Assembly (NCBI GenBank): GCA_977016875.1
Contig: CDRNST010000195.1
Location: 2,790,001 to 2,854,000 of the forward strand
Length of the DNA: 64,000 bases
Direction of reading: 5' to 3'
Source: Pavona decussata
Lineage: Eukaryota
Shown here: one piece after another, positions 2,200 through 58,330 of the stretch
Position numbering within the stretch: the stretch's first letter is position 1
How the letters are laid out: each line of letters opens with the position of its first letter
Notes under the pieces: generated by a model
Seen by the model: the letters and a program-made list of their open reading frames with translations, nothing else
What the model was told of the DNA's origin: nothing
The model's database searches: none
Made by a program: the position numbers and the translations under genes

Positions 2200-2745
2200 A
2201 TAAAGTCGTTATACTCGATATCTATGAATTCAACATACCTTTAACTGGGATTTTCATGTATTGGTATTATCACGGTAATCTTCCAGCATATTTCATAATT
2301 TTTTTTACCATCAATGAAAGCATACGTTCTTATAATACACGATCCGCGACAAAAATACATGTTGAATTTCAAAGCACAAATTATGGAAAATTTTCTCTCA
2401 GGTGTAAAGGAGCAACTATGTGGAACAGTCTACCTGATGATATTAAGAACATTGATTCTTTTGATCGTTTTAAAAAAGGCTTAAAATTATATATTCAAAA
2501 TCAGCCGTGTAATGAATAGTAGAACAAGTATGGTTAATTAGTAAAATGAGACCTACAATGTAATTAGTTTACTTGTAATTAGTCCGCCTTCTGTAATTAG
2601 TCTTAGTAAATTGTGTTGATACTGCGGAGATCTTTTAAAAAGCTCATTAGAGCTTGCTGGATCTCCTGCCTTATCCGATACTACATGTATATGATTATGA
2701 TGTATATGTTTGAATGAAAGAAGGCGAATAAAGAAGCAACGACAC
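2200..2745 (+). mobile_element. CR1/L2-type LINE 3' fragment (ORF2 C-terminus plus 3'UTR)
   Basis: ORF 2256..2519 (LPxYF..SYNTRS..YGKFSLRCKGATMWNSLP..FKK) is a typical CR1/L2 ORF2 C-terminus, followed by an AT-rich UTR with AATAAA. Confidence 0.75.
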
Positions 2746-4719
2746 AAAAGTCGATTCCAATGAAGCAGCACCGTCGCTCGATCTGTCGCAACCTATTGGG
2801 GTGGTAACAATGACCCCTGCATTCAGATACAGCTATTGATCTCCATTCACCTCTATCTAGCCACTGGCGTAATAATGTTTCAAGGATGTGCGTTCAAATT
2901 CTGGGCTAAAAAGGAATTTGCCATCCTTCAGAAATTAACAGATTCCTCTGTCTGCACCTTGCAACAAGAAATTCAAGACACCTATAATATCCCACATGAT
3001 AAAACCTTGCTAGAAAACCTCAGCGATGCCCTTGGTTCTCTACCGTGCAAGAAAACCAAACCAAAAGTGAAGAAAGCAAACCAAACGAATGAAGGTAATG
3101 ATCAGGATTCACGCAATCAACTGCTTCGGCCTCTTTTGTCACACCGCTTTAAAGTGCCCCTAACCCTTCAATTTGTTTTCTTTAGGTAGATTTCCATATC
3201 TTTCAAGAACTCATTTTCGAAAAAAATTTTTGAGAAATATTGAATCCTTTTTTTTTTACAAGCGCTAGAAGTGAAGGCAGTCTTGTCGATATTTTCACCT
3301 ATAGTTTGCATAAGTCCCCCACTCGGCCAAATGTGTCCAAATATGGAGCGTGACGTAAGAAAAGGACATCGTGCAAAAATATCCGAAGAGTCGTGGTAAT
3401 GCTCCAATCGCAAACAGAGAAGATGTTTAAAAAATGTGTGGTTTTTGGATGCAGCAACTCTTGAAATGTAGAGAAAGGAATCAGCATGCATAAGATTCAT
3501 GCTTCGTGCTTTGGAATGGTGTCCTTTTCTTACCTCATGGAAAGCAACCTTCTTACTGTATGTTTAATCGCTTCCTCACATATGATAGTCAGCTTGAAGT
3601 TTTAACATGTAAAATGCAACTGTATGCTTGCTATTAGGCTTGAAAGAAGCCCAAGTAGCCACGACACAAGTTGTCTTCCCATCATCTTGACTGATTTTTC
3701 ACTCAGGAGAACACAGACTGAGATAGACGCACTGGACTGGATCTATGGCATCATCGTATTTGTAAACCCCCTTTTTCATCGGTCCACATGAAAACTATAA
3801 GGCAGCATTCTCACTCTGGGGGCCATTTTCGAAAACATCCATAACTTGTGGACCAAAGGCTAAAACGGAGGAGGGGAATCTCCCATTTTCAAAAATTTAC
3901 GGATATGTGTGGACAGGACCTAAAAGCTTACTAAATGCACTTGTTTGATATGCAGGGCAGGGCGGGGGCACTTTTATAAAGAGATGATGAATGGGTATTT
4001 GTCTGGCCAAAAGCTGGTTGTGTTCGAGCAAAAGTAGGTCTGACTGGACAACTTGAACTTATTGGGAACTTATTTCAAGCCCTGGTAGATGTTACCGTAG
4101 ATTCTGGGCAACAATAATAATTTATTACGGCCATCACTTCTAACTTGTTTACTTAATACACAGCAATTCTGCCCCTCAGATTCTGAAGAATGCAGTTTTG
4201 TTTTCAGTAGAATCAATTTTTGTTCGGGTATTCAGTGTACTTTGAAAAGTTTGATATTCACTGGCATTCAAGTTTTTTTTCTAATCGACTGATTCAAGAC
4301 TGTAACAGAATTTGGAAAAAAAGGTGCAGCACACCTTGCCATTGATCCGTAATGGCGGCGGCTACTTCTGTGAGCTTGACTACATGTTGAAAAATACTCA
4401 CTTAGATTGCACAAGTTTGCAGATTTGTGTTGTGGTCCATTTTCTGACTGCGTCCTGGCGCTAAGGGCCTAGCTGGAGTAATGAATCCCTCTCTTGATCA
4501 GCTTATAGTCAATATCATGGCGATTTTCCAGCAAATAGCGACACTGATGAGACTCTTAGTTCTAATTTCAGGTCATTTAATTGTTTTCAGGTCCATTTAT
4601 TCAGCTCATTTATGGTAAATGAGGAAATCTGGTTTGTTGCAGAGGTAGCCATGAAAGGTTTAAGTGGTAAGTGAAATAGACATAATCAAGCTCACTGGAT
4701 CACACTTTCTGCACACCAG

Positions 4720-47060: not shown

Positions 47061-47459
47061 CAATAACTAAAGCTATGGAAACTAGCCCTGGTGAAGTTTT
47101 CAACAAAAAAAATTATAGAGTTGAAGTAAATTTATTTTTCCACTAAACCGACAAGTCTAGGGGCCAGTAGGTACATATTTTTACTAGCCTGGCAATAAAT
47201 TGTCCCAGCAAAGTGTGGATTGTTGGGCTGCTTCACATGCAGTCATTTAGTGGCCAGAGAAAGGTGTGTTCCACCAAAAACTACATATGTATGGGAGTCC
47301 TTGTCCTCTATTTTCCATTCATTCTTGTGCGAAATTCCTTTGGCCACTACAAAAAGTGCTCCATATCTGCCAGCGAGAATTTTTTGAAGCCCTAATAATC
47401 ATGTCACAGCTTCACTGGGCAGGGCATGTAAGTTGGAAGGCCATCATCATCATCATCTT

Positions 47460-51465: not shown

Positions 51466-51577
51466 AAAGAGTTTTCAGTAAGAACTTCCACAGATTGCAT
51501 GTTGTGGATTAGGTGCAGTGTTGCTTTTTCCATTAATTACAGCAACCCAAGAAGTTATTACACTAAAACAAGAAATA

Positions 51578-52123
51578 CAATCAACTCTCTCATAGCGACC
51601 ACTTCTCGTAAGTGACCACCTCCCGTAACCAACCACTTCGTAAACAACCGTTTTGTTTCTCAGCTAAATACTGTTTCAAGAGCTCTCTTGTAAGCGACCA
51701 CCACTCAATTTCTTAAGAGACCACGACCACTTTTTAGGCCAGAAATTACACATATTCTTTTGTTTTCTGTTTCCGGTAAGCGACCACCCAACATAATCAC
51801 GTATGATTGTTAGTTAATCATTACTTAGAAGTGACAAAAGTTCAATTTTTAATGACGCTACCCCGGACTGCTGACAGATAATAACAGTTTACAGACAGAG
51901 AAGATGGCTATAATTAGATCTGTAGGTAAACGGGACAGATCTGTTCCGCAAGGTTATACAAAGTTTCATCAGAAGAATGAATAAATGTGAAAAAATCAAA
52001 TAAATTAGTTTCTATTTGCCTAATTTAGCTGCTAAGGTAAAATTACGCTTATTCTGTTGATCTTTCCCGTAAACGACCACTTTGTCGTGCGCCAAGGGTG
52101 GTCGCTTACGAGAGAGTTAACTG
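51578..52123. mobile_element. Tc1/mariner (pogo-like) MITE
   Basis: TA|caatcaactctctcatagcgacca ... tggtcgcttacgagagagttaactg|TA TIRs, with internal taagcgaccac sub-repeats. Confidence 0.75.
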
Positions 52124-52700
52124 TATTGCAATTTGTACATAGTATGTTAACTGTCAAGTATAGTCTTTCATGTAAATATTTACAAAAGGTTGAGAGAAGA
52201 AGAAAAAGTAGATTATGATACATATCTCTGTGATGTTTTTACTTTAAGAGTCAAATTCAAAATTAATAATAGGCTCCTTTTGAAAAAGTTAGAGCAAGAG
52301 AAATGTACAAATGGAAATGCTTGCTGCGCAGGCTACAATACCCCTAACACTAAGAACTGAACAGATTTTTTACATGTCATTTTACATCTGACACCCCCTC
52401 GCCCAATACATGACTGAGCAAAACGTGATACTGATTTTTTTTACTCCCCAAAACAATAGTTTGTCAAAATTTCCAATCTCCCTATTTGTTGGCTGAACAA
52501 TACCCTTTACAATCATGTAATGCTGAAAGGAGCCAGCTTTTGTGACCCTTCACCCTACTTCCTCAACTGATTTATTCTACAACCTTACAAAAACTCAGAA
52601 TTACCCAATTGTATAAAAGTGAAGGCTATAAAATCTAAACACACGGCAAAGCAGCAATTTGTAAACATAGCATTAAGTTAAGATCCACACAGATTTGTTA

Positions 52701-53994
52701 TTAATCAGAATTTTTTTCTTTCTGCTGGGCAAGTTCCTTAATATCCTCCAGGAGATGCGCCTGCTCCGCCTCTTTCGTGACCTCATCAACATAGATGGAT
52801 GGCCTTGCCATCTCCAAGGCTGCTAGTATGCTAGATAATGAGATATATGACACAATGTATTTATAATTAAAACGTCAGAATAATTCTAATATTTCATGCA
52901 AAAACCCACATAGGCTTTATAAGAATTCAACAATGGTTACATTTACTTTTAATATTACTTTGTTTTTCTTTAACAAGCATATGTTAACATAGTGTAGAGG
53001 GTTTCTTCCAGAAAAGGCAATTAATCATCTAAAAAAGATCGTCTGAAAATTACAGACTGCCTGTCTGAGAATATGCCGCTCAATATTTTTCAGAATTACG
53101 GAGAAACCTCAGGCATTCAATCTTCCAATCTTTAGGACGTGTTTGCGTGAGGAAGGAACTATAATTATGCTAGGAAAGTCTCAGCTTGCTCCCGTCCTTC
53201 TGAGGTAACTTATTGTGATAAATGCAAATAGTGTCCGAGAATAGGTACATTTACTGTAGTTTCATACATTTTTCATTTTCAGACAACCTTGAGCTTAATC
53301 CAAACAGGCAAATACATCATGCAATAAAAATGTACCTACCATTTCCACTTCTAATGTCAAGGATCACATCGCCCTCTTTGGAAAATGTTTCTATCAGTGA
53401 TTCATACAGCTCATTTGGTTGGTAACTATTTTCTCTTTTTGTGTTAATTACATTTTGGTGGTCCTTGAGACATGCTGGTCAGTGAGATTGTTATGGGATA
53501 CTGCCCAGTGGCCCACAACAAAGCACTCAACTACTTCAGTCATAAGTATATCTGAAAGAAAAATGTTGCAACAATTCCATTTGCATTAACACCATCATTC
53601 GAATTAATTTAATACCATTAATAGTTAGGAAGTCCCTTTAATTTTTTTCACTTTCCATATAACACATCAAACTCTAAGAAAATCACATGCACCATTTCCT
53701 TTGCTTCCCTTCCCTTTGAGAATTTTCGTAAACTTGGGCAAGAGGGAAATAGGGTTGGACAACAGAAATTTAGAGCAGCTTACCTACAGTGTATAAGCAA
53801 AGCTGAAATTGGACATTTTTGAGCCCCAAATATTAATGGTGGTGATGATGACTCCCAACAGAACAGCATTAAGAAATACAGTTTACCTTTTTACCCAATA
53901 TGCGTGAACAGTCATCTCTCCATGATGGTCTTGGTTCCGGAGGATTACCTGAAATATCGTCTCCTCCAAACAGCTGCATCCAGCACCTCTCAAC
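52701..53994 (-). pseudogene. Spliced gene relic resembling the C-terminal half of a beta-class N6-adenine/N4-cytosine DNA methyltransferase
   Basis: Exons 53551-53336 and 52830-52701 splice in frame (GT-AG) to ..NVINTKRENSYQPNELYESLIETFSKEGDVILDIRSGNGSILAALEMARPSIYVDE..stop, matching motifs X-I-II. One frameshift near 53468. Candidate upstream exon 53994-53887. Confidence 0.6.
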
Positions 53995-54293
53995 CTACAA
54001 GTAACAGTATGCAGCACATGTATCAAATACACAATAAATTATAGTTTCAAGCAGTCTGAATGCTGTAGATACTGTTCTATGCCATGGGTGTTACCATGTA
54101 AAAATTGTTTTTCACTAAAAAATGTTCCAGGGCAGCACTATAAGTGGTTTAATTGTGAGAGCAGGGAGGGTTGACATAAAAAAAGGAACTAAGTTCCTTT
54201 AACTTTACAGTACAATTAGGGTCCAAATGTACCTACAGGAAACCTGTCAATACCCAGGTATTTTTAGTGTGTTCAGCAATAATGCAACATTTA

Positions 54294-55086: not shown

Positions 55087-55807
55087 GCCGCCCTTGCAAG
55101 CATGGCACACCCAAAATTAACTACAATAATCAGATCACAAAGACTAGCAGAACCTGAACAATTGAAAACTAACTCCTAAAAAAAGCCGCCCATGCAAACT
55201 GAATCAGGAATTAGACTGTTCATAACAAGAAGTAAAAAAGTAACTCCTGACAAAATCGCCCATGCAAACTGAGTCAGGAATTACACCCTTTATGACAAGA
55301 ACTTTAAGTAGCTCCTGAAAAAGTTGCCCATGCAAACTGAATCAGGAATTAGACCGTTCACAAAAAGAATGAAAAAAGGAACTCCTGACAAAATCGCCCA
55401 TGCAAACTGAGTCAGGAATTACACCCTTCATGACAAGAACTTAAAGTAGCTCCTGAAAGAGCTGCCTATGCAAACTGAGTCAAGAATTCAAGTGGAGCAG
55501 CCGCCCATGCAAGCATGCCACACCTGACTTACTATCCATAAGGAATAAGAAATGGTAAAATAATTTACCATCTTTTGCTAGCTGCAAAATTGATCCTTGG
55601 TAACAAGGAAAATTGAGATCAATATAGTAAGATACAACAAGGTGGGGCGGCCGCCCATGCAAACTAACCCACCTTACCAGTACTTATGATGACAGACTGA
55701 AATTATGCCAAAAAATAAAAGATGGTAAAAATTGCTATTTGCTAGATGAATTCTTAGTAACAAGGAAAATTGAGAGAAACAGAGGGGGCAGCCGCCCATG
55801 CAAACTG
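55087..55807 (-). repeat. Array of GCCCATGCAA motifs, including five ~69-bp hairpin units
   Basis: Motif at about 55090, 55188, 55258, 55326, 55396, 55464, 55503, 55653 and 55794. Alternating A/B units form a ~138-bp higher-order repeat. Confidence 0.92.
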
Positions 55808-55846: not shown

Positions 55847-56760
55847 TCAGGAACGGAGACTGGGAACCCTGATATAGCGCATAAAAGCATTGGACTTCCA
55901 GCGTCCTAACATTCTTATCTGAGTATCAGAAAACCCCTGATCTGCTGCATATGAAGCCGCACCAATTCGGAAACTATGACCTTTATAACGGGAAAGATCT
56001 AAGCCACACAATTGACAAGCCCTTAAAAGCTGGTTGGAGGAAAATGACCTTGAGACAGGCAACCCATCCTCTGAAAGGAAAATGGCCCCAGGTCTGACGC
56101 CCTGTAAGGTGAAGTACTGTGACAACAATGCAACGGAACAGGTGGAATTGGGCTGCCGGGAAAGAACCACCGAAAAGGGGCGTGCATTGTAGCTATGTTT
56201 AAAATCCCCAAAGGTAAGTTTAAAAGCCATCAATTCCCCAGATGGTGAAATCAATTTAGTGAGCTGATATAACTGAAGGGGAGGGTTAGCATTGCTATTA
56301 CATGTAGCAGTCATTTCGCCTATGCGCGAAAAGGCATAAAAGGCGAAAGAGCACATAGCCGGAAACTTACTCATTTGGTAGGTAGACCCCTGTAAGGATG
56401 GAGCTATTGATACTAACCGGTCCAAAATAGGAAGTGTTATAGGAAGGCGGCTATCCAAACGGAAACCCACCTTCTTATAGCCCTTGAGGATTTGAGAAAC
56501 ATAAAACACTTTAAATGGATCAGGGAAACCGAACAGCTTATGCGAATATCCCAAGGCCGAAATGTATGTGGTCACAGTAGATGGGGCATAGTGGAAATCA
56601 AACAAATAAGCAATAAACAGAGCCAGTAGTGATGGGGAAATGGGAAGAAAAGCAAAGGGTTAGTTGAAAACTGAATTGTAGAATTTATGAAAAAGCTTCC
56701 AAGCCCACCGATAAGTGGGAATGGCAGATGGTTGCAGGCTTGAACGCAGCAGATAGGAGG
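55847..56760 (-). CDS. Tyrosine recombinase of Ngaro element (5' part disrupted)
   Basis: Catalytic residues FSRIGE, HSFRIGAA, LGRWKS and RYIR in ORF 55847..56605. Confidence 0.93.
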
Positions 56761-56781
56761 TCACTGACGCCAACTGAGAGG

Positions 56782-58330
56782 CTAGAGATGAAGAGGGATC
56801 TCTGTGGGATGAGGATTCATGTAGGCCGGTGCCAGTTGTTTGAAAGTCTGCAATTTTAACCGAGAAAGGGCATCAGCAAGAACATTGTGCACACCCGCAA
56901 TAGGCTTGGCTTTAAAACAAATATTCTTTTCCAAACAAACAAGCACCAGGCTACGAACTAAAAACATCAAGTTCATATCCCTACAAGACTGCTTGTTGAT
57001 GACATGAACCAATGCCTCATTATCAGTAAAGAAAAGGATGCGTTGATTCTGCATTTCATGGCCCCATAAATGCAGACTCAAAACAATTGGGTGAAGTTCT
57101 AAAAAGGCAATGTTTAGGTGACACCAGCTATCCTGCCACCGACCGTAACACCAATGTCTACCAAAAACAGCACCATAACCCAAGGCACCAGAGGCATCAG
57201 TATACAGTTCTAGCTGATGAGAATTGGTCCACTGATCAGTCAGAAAAAATGAGCGACCATTAAAACTTGAGAGAAACGATTGCCAAACCAACAAATCCTG
57301 TTTGACTTGGCTAGAAAGGCGAATGTGGTTTTCGTACTTCAATGGTCAAATCAATTAACCTGCGCAAGAAAGCCCGACCTGGGACAACAACAGTACAGGC
57401 AAAATTGAGCAATCCTGTAAATGATTGAATTTCCTGAAGAGTGACCTTACGCCGACGAAGAAAAGCCGAGAGAAGTTCACGACATTTATCCAGCTTTCTT
57501 GGGGTAAACGGGCCTCCGTCAGAACTGTGTCCAGCTCAATACCCGCAAAAGCCAGTGTTGTCGATGGGCCAACAGTTTTTTCTGGTGCCATGGGTATACC
57601 CAAATAACTACAGAACATTAAAAAATTATCCAACTGATGTTGGCATGAGGCTTGAGAGGGAGAAACTATCAAGAAATCATCTAGCAAATGCAAAATATAA
57701 GGAATATGCAACTTCTTCTGGGCAGTCCATTCAAGAGCAGTCGAAAACATCTCAAAAGTTCTACAGGAACTTGAACAGCCCGTAGGCATGCACCTATCAT
57801 AATAATAAAGGCCTTGCCAGGATATTCCCAAAAGATCGTAGTCTTCAGGGCTAATAGGAATTAAACGAAAGGCATTCTTAACATCAGTTTTGGCTAAAAA
57901 ACAATTTTGATCCACAGACTTAATCAAGCGAATGGCATCCTCCACGGTGGCATTTGAAACACCAGTGTAATCAAAAGAAATTCCATCATTCAAAGAGGAG
58001 CCTCTTGGATAAGAAAGATGGTGAATTAGACGAAACTCACCCTCAATGTTCTTGGGAACTAAACCGAGGGGTAATACTCGAAAGACTGGGAAAGGGGGGG
58101 ATGAAAAAGGACCAGCAAGCCTATGGGCGTCAAGCTCCTTAGAAAGCTTAGCATTTACAGCCGCCGGATTTTGCAGAGCTGAAAGAAGGTTAGGGGCCTC
58201 TTGAGAACACGAGGTCCATCAAAGTGCAAAGGAAAACCAAATGTAAAACCAGAGGCTAGTAACTGAACAATTGAATGGTCATACCCAGTAAGAAAAGGAA
58301 GCATACGCCTAATGCTTACAGGGGTTGGTA
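56782..58330 (-). pseudogene. Ngaro RT and RNase H (frameshifted)
   Basis: AKTDVKNAFR, GCSSSC, HLLDDFL, AGIELDT; RNase H YTDASG, LELHPI, TDNEAL, NVLADALSR. Confidence 0.93.

Follow-up and report, generated by a model that had tools for sequence, protein, structure and literature searches.

A probable remnant of a transposon gene with ParB-like and methylase-like halves in the coral Pavona decussata

What kind of gene has left its traces between positions 52701 and 53994 of a 64,000-nucleotide stretch of the Pavona decussata genome (contig CDRNST010000195.1, 2,790,001 to 2,854,000; below, the window)? The original prediction, made from the letters of the window, saw here a spliced gene resembling a bacterial-type N6A/N4C DNA methyltransferase and took it to be the cargo of a transposon. 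Two questions follow: whether the gene family encodes a methylase, and whether a transposon carries it. Exons were searched singly, and the full-length analysis was made on proteins from public databases, not on a spliced model of the window copy.

Exons of the window copy

The window copy retains three of at least eight exons, which are called A, F and last here, and F is split by a frameshift. The features are listed below, together with a relic of a further exon found elsewhere in the window.

52701 to 52830, minus strand: last exon, (S)ILAALEMARPSIYVDEVTKEAEQAHLLEDIKELAQQKEKNSD, closed by TAA; encodes helix A, strand 2 and the helix at the C-terminus
52831 to 53335, minus strand: GT-AG intron of 505 bp, at the same place in paralogs
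53336 to 53427, minus strand: 3' portion of exon F, SYQPNELYESLIETFSKEGDVILDIRSGNG; encodes the helix of motif X, strand 1 and the beginning of motif I
53451 to 53558, minus strand: 5' part of exon F, ..ILMTEVVECFVVGHWAVSHNNLTDQHVSRTTKM and then a stop; strand-7 region of the methylase-like fold
53882 to 53994, minus strand: relic of exon A, VERCWMQLFGGDDISGNPPEPRPSWRDDCSRILGKK; linker that joins the ParB N-domain to the HTH region
47183 to 47404, minus strand: relic of the ParB N-domain exon, ..ALFVVAKGISHKNEWKIEDKDSHTYVVFGGTHLSLATK, a stop and LHVKQPNNPHFAG..; two in-frame stops; found by tblastn with anthozoan proteins (E down to 2.7e-12)

The 505-bp intron is where it had been predicted, with its GT at 53335-53334 and its AG at 52832-52831. 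Both predicted peptides are also borne out: the minus-strand frame from 53478 reads ..NSYQPNELYESLIETFSKEGDVILDIRSGNG, splicing gives ..SGNG-S-ILAALEMARPSIYVDE.., and the last exon then stays open to the TAA at 52703-52701. The intron is conserved, because paralogs carry a homologous last exon downstream of exon F. By tblastn alone no paralog of the last exon was found; a small profile of C-terminal tails located last exons 200-700 bp downstream of exon F in C24/C78 and in C98/C26/C282 (paralogs are named here after their contigs). The homologous tails read GNTFVSALNSGRSALLIAPTEE in P0050, a 517-aa gene model from Exaiptasia, GNAFIAAVTGERKAVLIGTS in C24, and GNGMLAGLKLKRTSIFIGQTGE in C98, C26 and C282. 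A second donor at 53339 (G/GTAGGT), in the phase used by the paralogs, is a possible alternative, judging from the letters.

The frameshift had been foreseen as well. The 5' part of exon F (53558-53451, ..MTEVVECFVVGHWAVSHNNLTDQHVSRTTKM and a stop) lies in a different frame from the 3' part, while the paralogs have a single open exon here. The stop is the product of this shift, apparently a single-base indel in CCAAAAT; exon F is open throughout in the paralogs L015, L017 and L019.

The relic of exon A is bordered by an AG acceptor at 53996-53995 and by a GT donor after 53882. Exons that are 55-74% identical to it occur at 8 other loci, and it aligns to EICRTQLF..GEPPQPSDSWRDMC in anthozoan proteins. 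Since the gap from A to F is only 322 bp, four internal exons are missing from the window copy, and a direct splice from A to F would be out of frame. The catalytic strand would have been encoded by these four, and the exons of strands 4-6 are among the losses.

The relic of the ParB N-domain exon at 47404-47183 is 46% identical to the ParB exon of C24 and 66-69% identical to those of the C98 and C282 copies. It is on the same strand as the other exons, 5.3 kb downstream of the 3' exons, so the order is wrong; because of this position it is a second fragment or a rearrangement.

Read contigs from four runs, of uncertain kind, span 53709-54159 unspliced. None of the contigs from these runs covers 52288-53391, and the 53335/52831 joint occurs in none. 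In one run (X3) a single contig links 51510 to 53709, skipping 2198 bp with non-canonical ends; it probably stems from a different copy or from an allele with a deletion, and not from splicing. The adjacent 51552-52287 is a very high-copy repeat, where contigs of four runs reach word depths of thousands and show numerous variants and loose ends. We infer that the copy at 52701-53994 is dead and itself without function.

The ParB-like and methylase-like halves of the family

Exon F is present at 10 places in the 602-Mb Pavona decussata genome, and the ParB exon at 11 loci. When three paralog loci were compared exon by exon, six or more additional conserved exons emerged. At least eight exons make up the intact gene, which encodes an N-terminal region, a ParB-like N-domain with an HTH, a helical middle and a C-terminal permuted methylase-type domain. 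Its introns are conserved among the paralogs, and in this respect the view that the gene has been eukaryotised stands.

A profile of exon F run against 1.84 billion representatives matched 73 proteins. Almost all are ORF calls the size of an exon; P0050 is among the matches. Word searches with P0050 and the alignment found full-length relatives in Exaiptasia, Montipora, Nematostella and Acropora only, all of them named 'uncharacterized'; Oculina has one fragment of the family, and a second word search with the alignment added no taxa. No Pfam model exceeded its cut-off on any family member, the full-length anthozoan proteins being without a match. Further, no Pfam model names this ParB and methylase-like family, and we found no animal-focused paper that describes it.

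Purifying selection acts between the paralogs. They are 40-60% diverged, and the dN/dS between diverged paralogs is about 0.2-0.5; therefore the protein has been retained for some purpose. Two of the copies, C24 and C78, share more than 30 kb of collinear sequence and may be alleles, not separate insertions.

The ParB half of the gene had been overlooked earlier. An AF2 model of the N-terminal half (P0078; pLDDT 71, from a 9-row alignment) matches Noc, ParB, Spo0J and KorB in Foldseek at E 2e-6 to 1e-5 over about 260 columns, and the matched span is the ParB N-domain plus the HTH. The best structures on this side are Noc (7nfu, E 2e-6), ParB (7bnk and 6sdk), Spo0J (1vz0) and KorB (8qa9). At the P-motif all members, including the relic in the window, have GGTH[LV] where ParB has GERR, and the arginine (GxxR) is absent. 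Mutation of the P-motif arginine abolishes nucleotide binding (PMC12704722).

For the other half, the comparison with PF01555 that had been proposed as a check came out in part. The window piece 53338-53478 does match N6_N4_Mtase (E 6.6e-4, 20.1 bits; profile positions 165-193 of 221), the sole match among the four window pieces scanned against Pfam, but it misses the gathering score of 26.7. A scan of the window pieces against NCBIfam gave no match, the paralog exons reach E 0.04-0.25 with PF01555, and a PF01555 search of the whole genome returned 0 matches. The similarity is nevertheless beyond chance, because the exon stands at 10 places in the genome and its profile matches a bacterial PF01555 enzyme. 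This is P0060, a protein with three DPPF-bearing PF01555 domains, matched at E 1.1e-5 on YPTQKPxELYxRIIxASSNxGDVVLDPFxGSG.

Other sequence comparisons are fainter. When the family C-terminus is aligned to bacterial domains with hhalign, motifs X, I and II are aligned at P 1e-3 and a probability of 20%, which is weak by itself. There are weak PHROG matches at the 3' part of exon F, and all the named ones are DNA methyltransferase families. Neighbours in the ESM atlas are phage clusters with ParB_N and N6_N4_Mtase, which we use as a lead only; tblastn against phage records found no similarity. A sequence search of the PDB with both profiles gave nothing useful, the exon profile reaching the G-loop of an mRNA cap methyltransferase at E 0.6.

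Structure comparison is clearer. The AF2 model of P0050 has a pLDDT of 69 (9-row alignment), with the C-terminal domain better than the rest, and its top Foldseek matches are exclusively permuted amino-methyltransferases at E about 1e-5. In VIA-align, residues 299-510 superimpose over about 190 residues on M1.HpyAVI (Z 16.2), MboIIA (15.7) and CcrM (15.5); RsrI gives 14.3, PvuII 14.2 and the bdelloid N4CMT 13.4, with BceJIV within 16.2-14.2. The C-terminal domain of the model thus shows a circularly permuted Rossmann fold, with strands 4-7, motif X and strands 1-2 in this predicted order. Profile and structure matches together bear out the reading of the window peptide as the motif X and motif I end of the beta-class (permuted) amino-methyltransferase fold. 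Membership of the MT-A70 group, considered for a GHW.. stretch like that of METTL3, was rejected: the structural scores favour the bacterial beta-class enzymes, and MT-A70 enzymes score lower (Z 11-12.7).

The catalytic motif IV, (D/N/S)PP(Y/F/W) behind strand 4, was found in no family member, and its position is unconserved: the family has GDTRGN, ANVTEN, GQAGKH, AKETDE, GNAGND, GDAYDD, GHVGW or GHAGF there. The window copy is without the motif IV exon altogether, and the DPPY/SPPY motif is absent from the window, as the prediction had said. A candidate for a degenerate motif IV, 'GNPPE' at 53.95 kb in the exon that starts at 53994, was rejected, since this exon corresponds to the linker that follows the ParB module.

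Behind strand 1, the SAM loop also varies freely, and its conserved glycines appear to have been lost across the family. The window itself reads DIRSGNGS..YVDE from this loop to the end of strand 2, which is compatible with motif I (FxGxG) and an acidic residue; relatives have EVSRTGNT, DFDSTNAF, LFIPSAIA and DMDNDTAG at the same loop. Between strand 7 and motif X, the would-be target-recognition region of the P0050 model has about 30 residues. With no motif IV in any member and a variable SAM loop, the claim of a working N6A/N4C methylase is not supported; to judge by these motifs, the protein would have lost its activity and is probably not an enzyme.

The transposon that carries the family

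Three copies of the gene lie in elements with recognisable ends: C282:426387-447279 (20,893 bp), C98:34883-58316, enlarged by an insert of 3.2 kb, and C26:2602652-2610474, which has lost 12.2 kb internally. They are 94-98% identical, the similarity stops at the same two points in each, and the flanks are unrelated. The TIRs are about 45 bp long and start with AACGCGTTCCAAACTAA... The TSDs are 4 bp and differ per insertion: ATAC, GTTT and TTGA.

Within the bounded element the ParB and methylase-like gene is on the minus strand, head to head with a multi-exon transposase on the plus strand. The transposase has a zf-DBF domain (4.8e-12) and DUF7869 (1.9e-28 and 8.3e-10), and would by analogy be assigned to the Sola1 group; within the literature searched, DUF7869 occurs in no paper. 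Its first large exon, L029:560-1321 (+) or C282:437859-438620, holds the DBF zinc finger and a weak BRCT-like stretch. Long subterminal tandem arrays lie inside both ends of the element (C282:444850-447020 and 426630-427850), and likewise in C26 and C98. Next to the transposase their period is 36 bp, with more than 50 copies, and on the side of the accessory gene it is about 67 bp. The arrays are candidate platforms for protein binding.

The association extends beyond these three copies. A diverged TIR of the C282 family lies 1.5 kb behind the C99 copy of the gene, and a genome-wide DUF7869 search found opposite-strand transposase exons about 5-10 kb from the 5' side of the C24, C78 and C271 copies. 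C144 is an exception, with transposase relics on the same strand and downstream of the gene. An earlier reading of 'no transposon linkage' came from 10-kb flanks, which shared only the gene's own exons, and longer flanks reversed it.

Two observations concern single loci. Between the C144 gene copy and its DUF7869 relics there is a 202-aa frame (L020 ~2560-3164 (-), C144 near 1789.6-1790.2 kb) whose start resembles a nuclear localisation signal and which contains a stretch reminiscent of a methyl-CpG-binding domain (..LPANWREKRYQRGSKTQLQFSSPGKTVYKTQAAVKEAL..). On C62 a distant ParB-like exon (4095252-4095569 (-), 29% identity) stands about 10 kb from opposite-strand DUF7869 exons at 4105964-4107390 (+), and this pair may represent another lineage, an old one, of the two-gene element.

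The prediction of transposon cargo therefore stands for the family, by TIRs and TSDs at three copies and transposase exons near four more, while for the window copy itself it is drawn from the paralogs only. Allowing 6 mismatches in 30, the window contains no C282-family TIR; tblastn matches nothing in it to the C282 transposase, and DUF7869 is absent, the nearest on the same contig being 85 kb away. Neither subterminal arrays nor long inverted repeats were found around 52.7-54.0 kb. The partner that had been proposed, the relics at 60.4-64 kb, is not supported: they have no Pfam hit and nothing in common with a DUF7869-type transposase, are absent near all paralogs and, unlike the arrangement in the bounded elements, are on the same strand as the gene.

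The Ngaro-like insertion between these relics and the gene is real, at 55847-57993 (-), with RT (PF00078, 1.2e-11), RNase H and tyrosine recombinase in order. A 70/138-bp tandem array at 55165-55488 lies behind the recombinase of this retroelement. That the gene fragment could be a DIRS1-type MT domain of the neighbouring element (55.8-58 kb) was considered and rejected, as the element has no MT domain and the paralogs are in DNA transposons.

Rival readings and known systems

We regard it as quite likely that 52701-53994 is what remains, without function, of an accessory gene that belonged to a giant cut-and-paste transposon, Sola1-type by analogy, and joined ParB to a permuted methylase fold. 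The gene would originally have been captured from a ParB-methylase fusion of phage or bacterial origin. The window copy has decayed by loss of four internal exons, the frameshift, displacement of the ParB exon and its stops, and loss of the element ends and the transposase. If the family were instead a domesticated host gene of anthozoans in repeat-rich DNA, the piece would be an ordinary pseudogene. Such a gene fits the conserved introns, the dN/dS below 1 between paralogs 40-60% diverged, the NCBI models in several anthozoans, the collinearity of C24 and C78 over more than 30 kb and the window flanks, which recur near no paralog. However, three copies share their TIRs but have different 4-bp TSDs and unrelated flanks, copies of three or more diverged lineages have DUF7869 exons within about 5-10 kb, and C26 has an internal-deletion derivative; a host gene is therefore unlikely.

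It is quite improbable, too, that the gene is, at least in the intact paralogs, a working eukaryotised N6-adenine or N4-cytosine DNA methyltransferase that marks the DNA of the transposon. The beta-class fold, the conserved motif X and strand 1, the SGNGS loop of the window and the description of the algal counterparts as predicted 4mC/6mA enzymes (PMC12477816) would suit an enzyme, but the unconserved motif IV position is never (D/N/S)PP(Y/F/W), the SAM loop is variable, the target-recognition region has about 30 residues, the PF01555 genome search is empty, and the exons of strands 4-6 are gone from the window copy. Hardly credible is an open frame that arose by chance, or a class-I SAM-methyltransferase motif of the generic kind (VLDxGxGxG), unrelated to DNA methylases. 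The sub-threshold Pfam match and the cap methyltransferase G-loop at E 0.6 might suggest it; against it, the position at the C-terminus behind strands 4-7 is the beta-class permutation, the structural matches span the whole domain and the exon is conserved across many loci and species, so that profile search, Foldseek and VIA-align effectively refute it.

Returning to the accessory gene of a transposon, its protein is probably a non-catalytic DNA-binding helper. The ParB HTH would most likely recognise the element's own subterminal arrays, and the methylase-like domain may serve as a DNA-contacting or scaffolding module. A wider idea is that anthozoan giant transposons keep a phage-derived ParB plus pseudo-methylase as a working second component, over a long divergence and under purifying selection, which binds their own arrays to aid transposition or to shield them from silencing, either without catalysis or with an unorthodox active site. 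We offer it tentatively and consider it rather doubtful. If it were true, it would be the first animal case of a class of transposon helpers so far reported from algae only.

Little is understood of cut-and-paste transposons that have two genes, one of them for a DNA-binding helper. For the algal counterparts, a role in marking their own DNA by 4mC or 6mA has been suggested (PMC12477816). The catalytically dead-looking coral version lets one ask whether the role of the helper is binding and not methylation. There is also a practical side: in surveys of 6mA/4mC 'writers' in animals, a fold match alone would mis-call such genes enzymes.

Among the closest known systems is Sola1-1_Ec32, a 21.5-kb element of Ectocarpus in which a gene for a ParB-like and DNA-methyltransferase protein lies opposite the transposase; 'similar proteins' are known from transposons of green and red algae (PMC12477816). 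In both hosts a ParB-like part is followed by a prokaryote-type amino-methyltransferase domain, and the gene is spliced and opposite the transposase. The sizes (20.9 kb here, 21.5 kb there) are close, though the likeness is one of description. The coral element differs in its animal host, with relatives only in Anthozoa, in its shorter protein (about 520-720 aa against 1104), in domains that Pfam does not detect and in the loss of motif IV and apparently of the SAM loop. The kind of ParB-methylase fusion is thus known from algae, while the animal, motif-less version is new.

A fusion of ParB to PF01555 is a typical phage feature (PMC12704722), and ParB-Tls loci are also described (PMC4738411). 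Domain order and folds are the same in the phage fusions of ParB_N and N6_N4_Mtase (PF02195 and PF01555) and in the coral gene, which however has introns, lacks both the P-motif arginine and DPPY, and shows no similarity at the BLAST level. In corals and sea anemones, a phage-type fusion of this sort seems to have turned into a spliced passenger of giant DNA transposons. With the beta-class bacterial enzymes M1.HpyAVI, M.MboIIA, CcrM, M.RsrI and M.PvuII the family shares the permuted Rossmann fold, and the motif X helix and strand 1 are still recognisable. In contrast to them, it has lost motif IV, its FxGxG is degenerate and its target-recognition region is tiny.

Among animals, N4CMT of bdelloid rotifers is a horizontally acquired 4mC methylase (PMC8885841). 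Like the coral family it is an animal gene with a bacterial beta-class fold and introns, and it is tied to transposon biology. The coral protein, however, is fused to ParB, sits inside a transposon and looks catalytically dead. N4CMT, an active host gene, retains the catalytic motif and is fused to a chromodomain.

METTL14 and MTA9 of Tetrahymena, non-catalytic partners within the MT-A70 clade, offer another parallel: they too have the permuted amino-methyltransferase fold, have lost the catalytic tetrapeptide and are kept under selection. They differ in the lower structural score (Z 11-12.7), and a PF01555 search found no active partner methyltransferase of the same kind as the coral protein in the genome. 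A different fusion appears in a gene model of Acropora cervicornis, P0081, where the ParB half of the family is joined to a DUF3504 / QRICH1 / tyrosine-recombinase (Crypton-like) part; this is probably a mis-joined model or an insertion.
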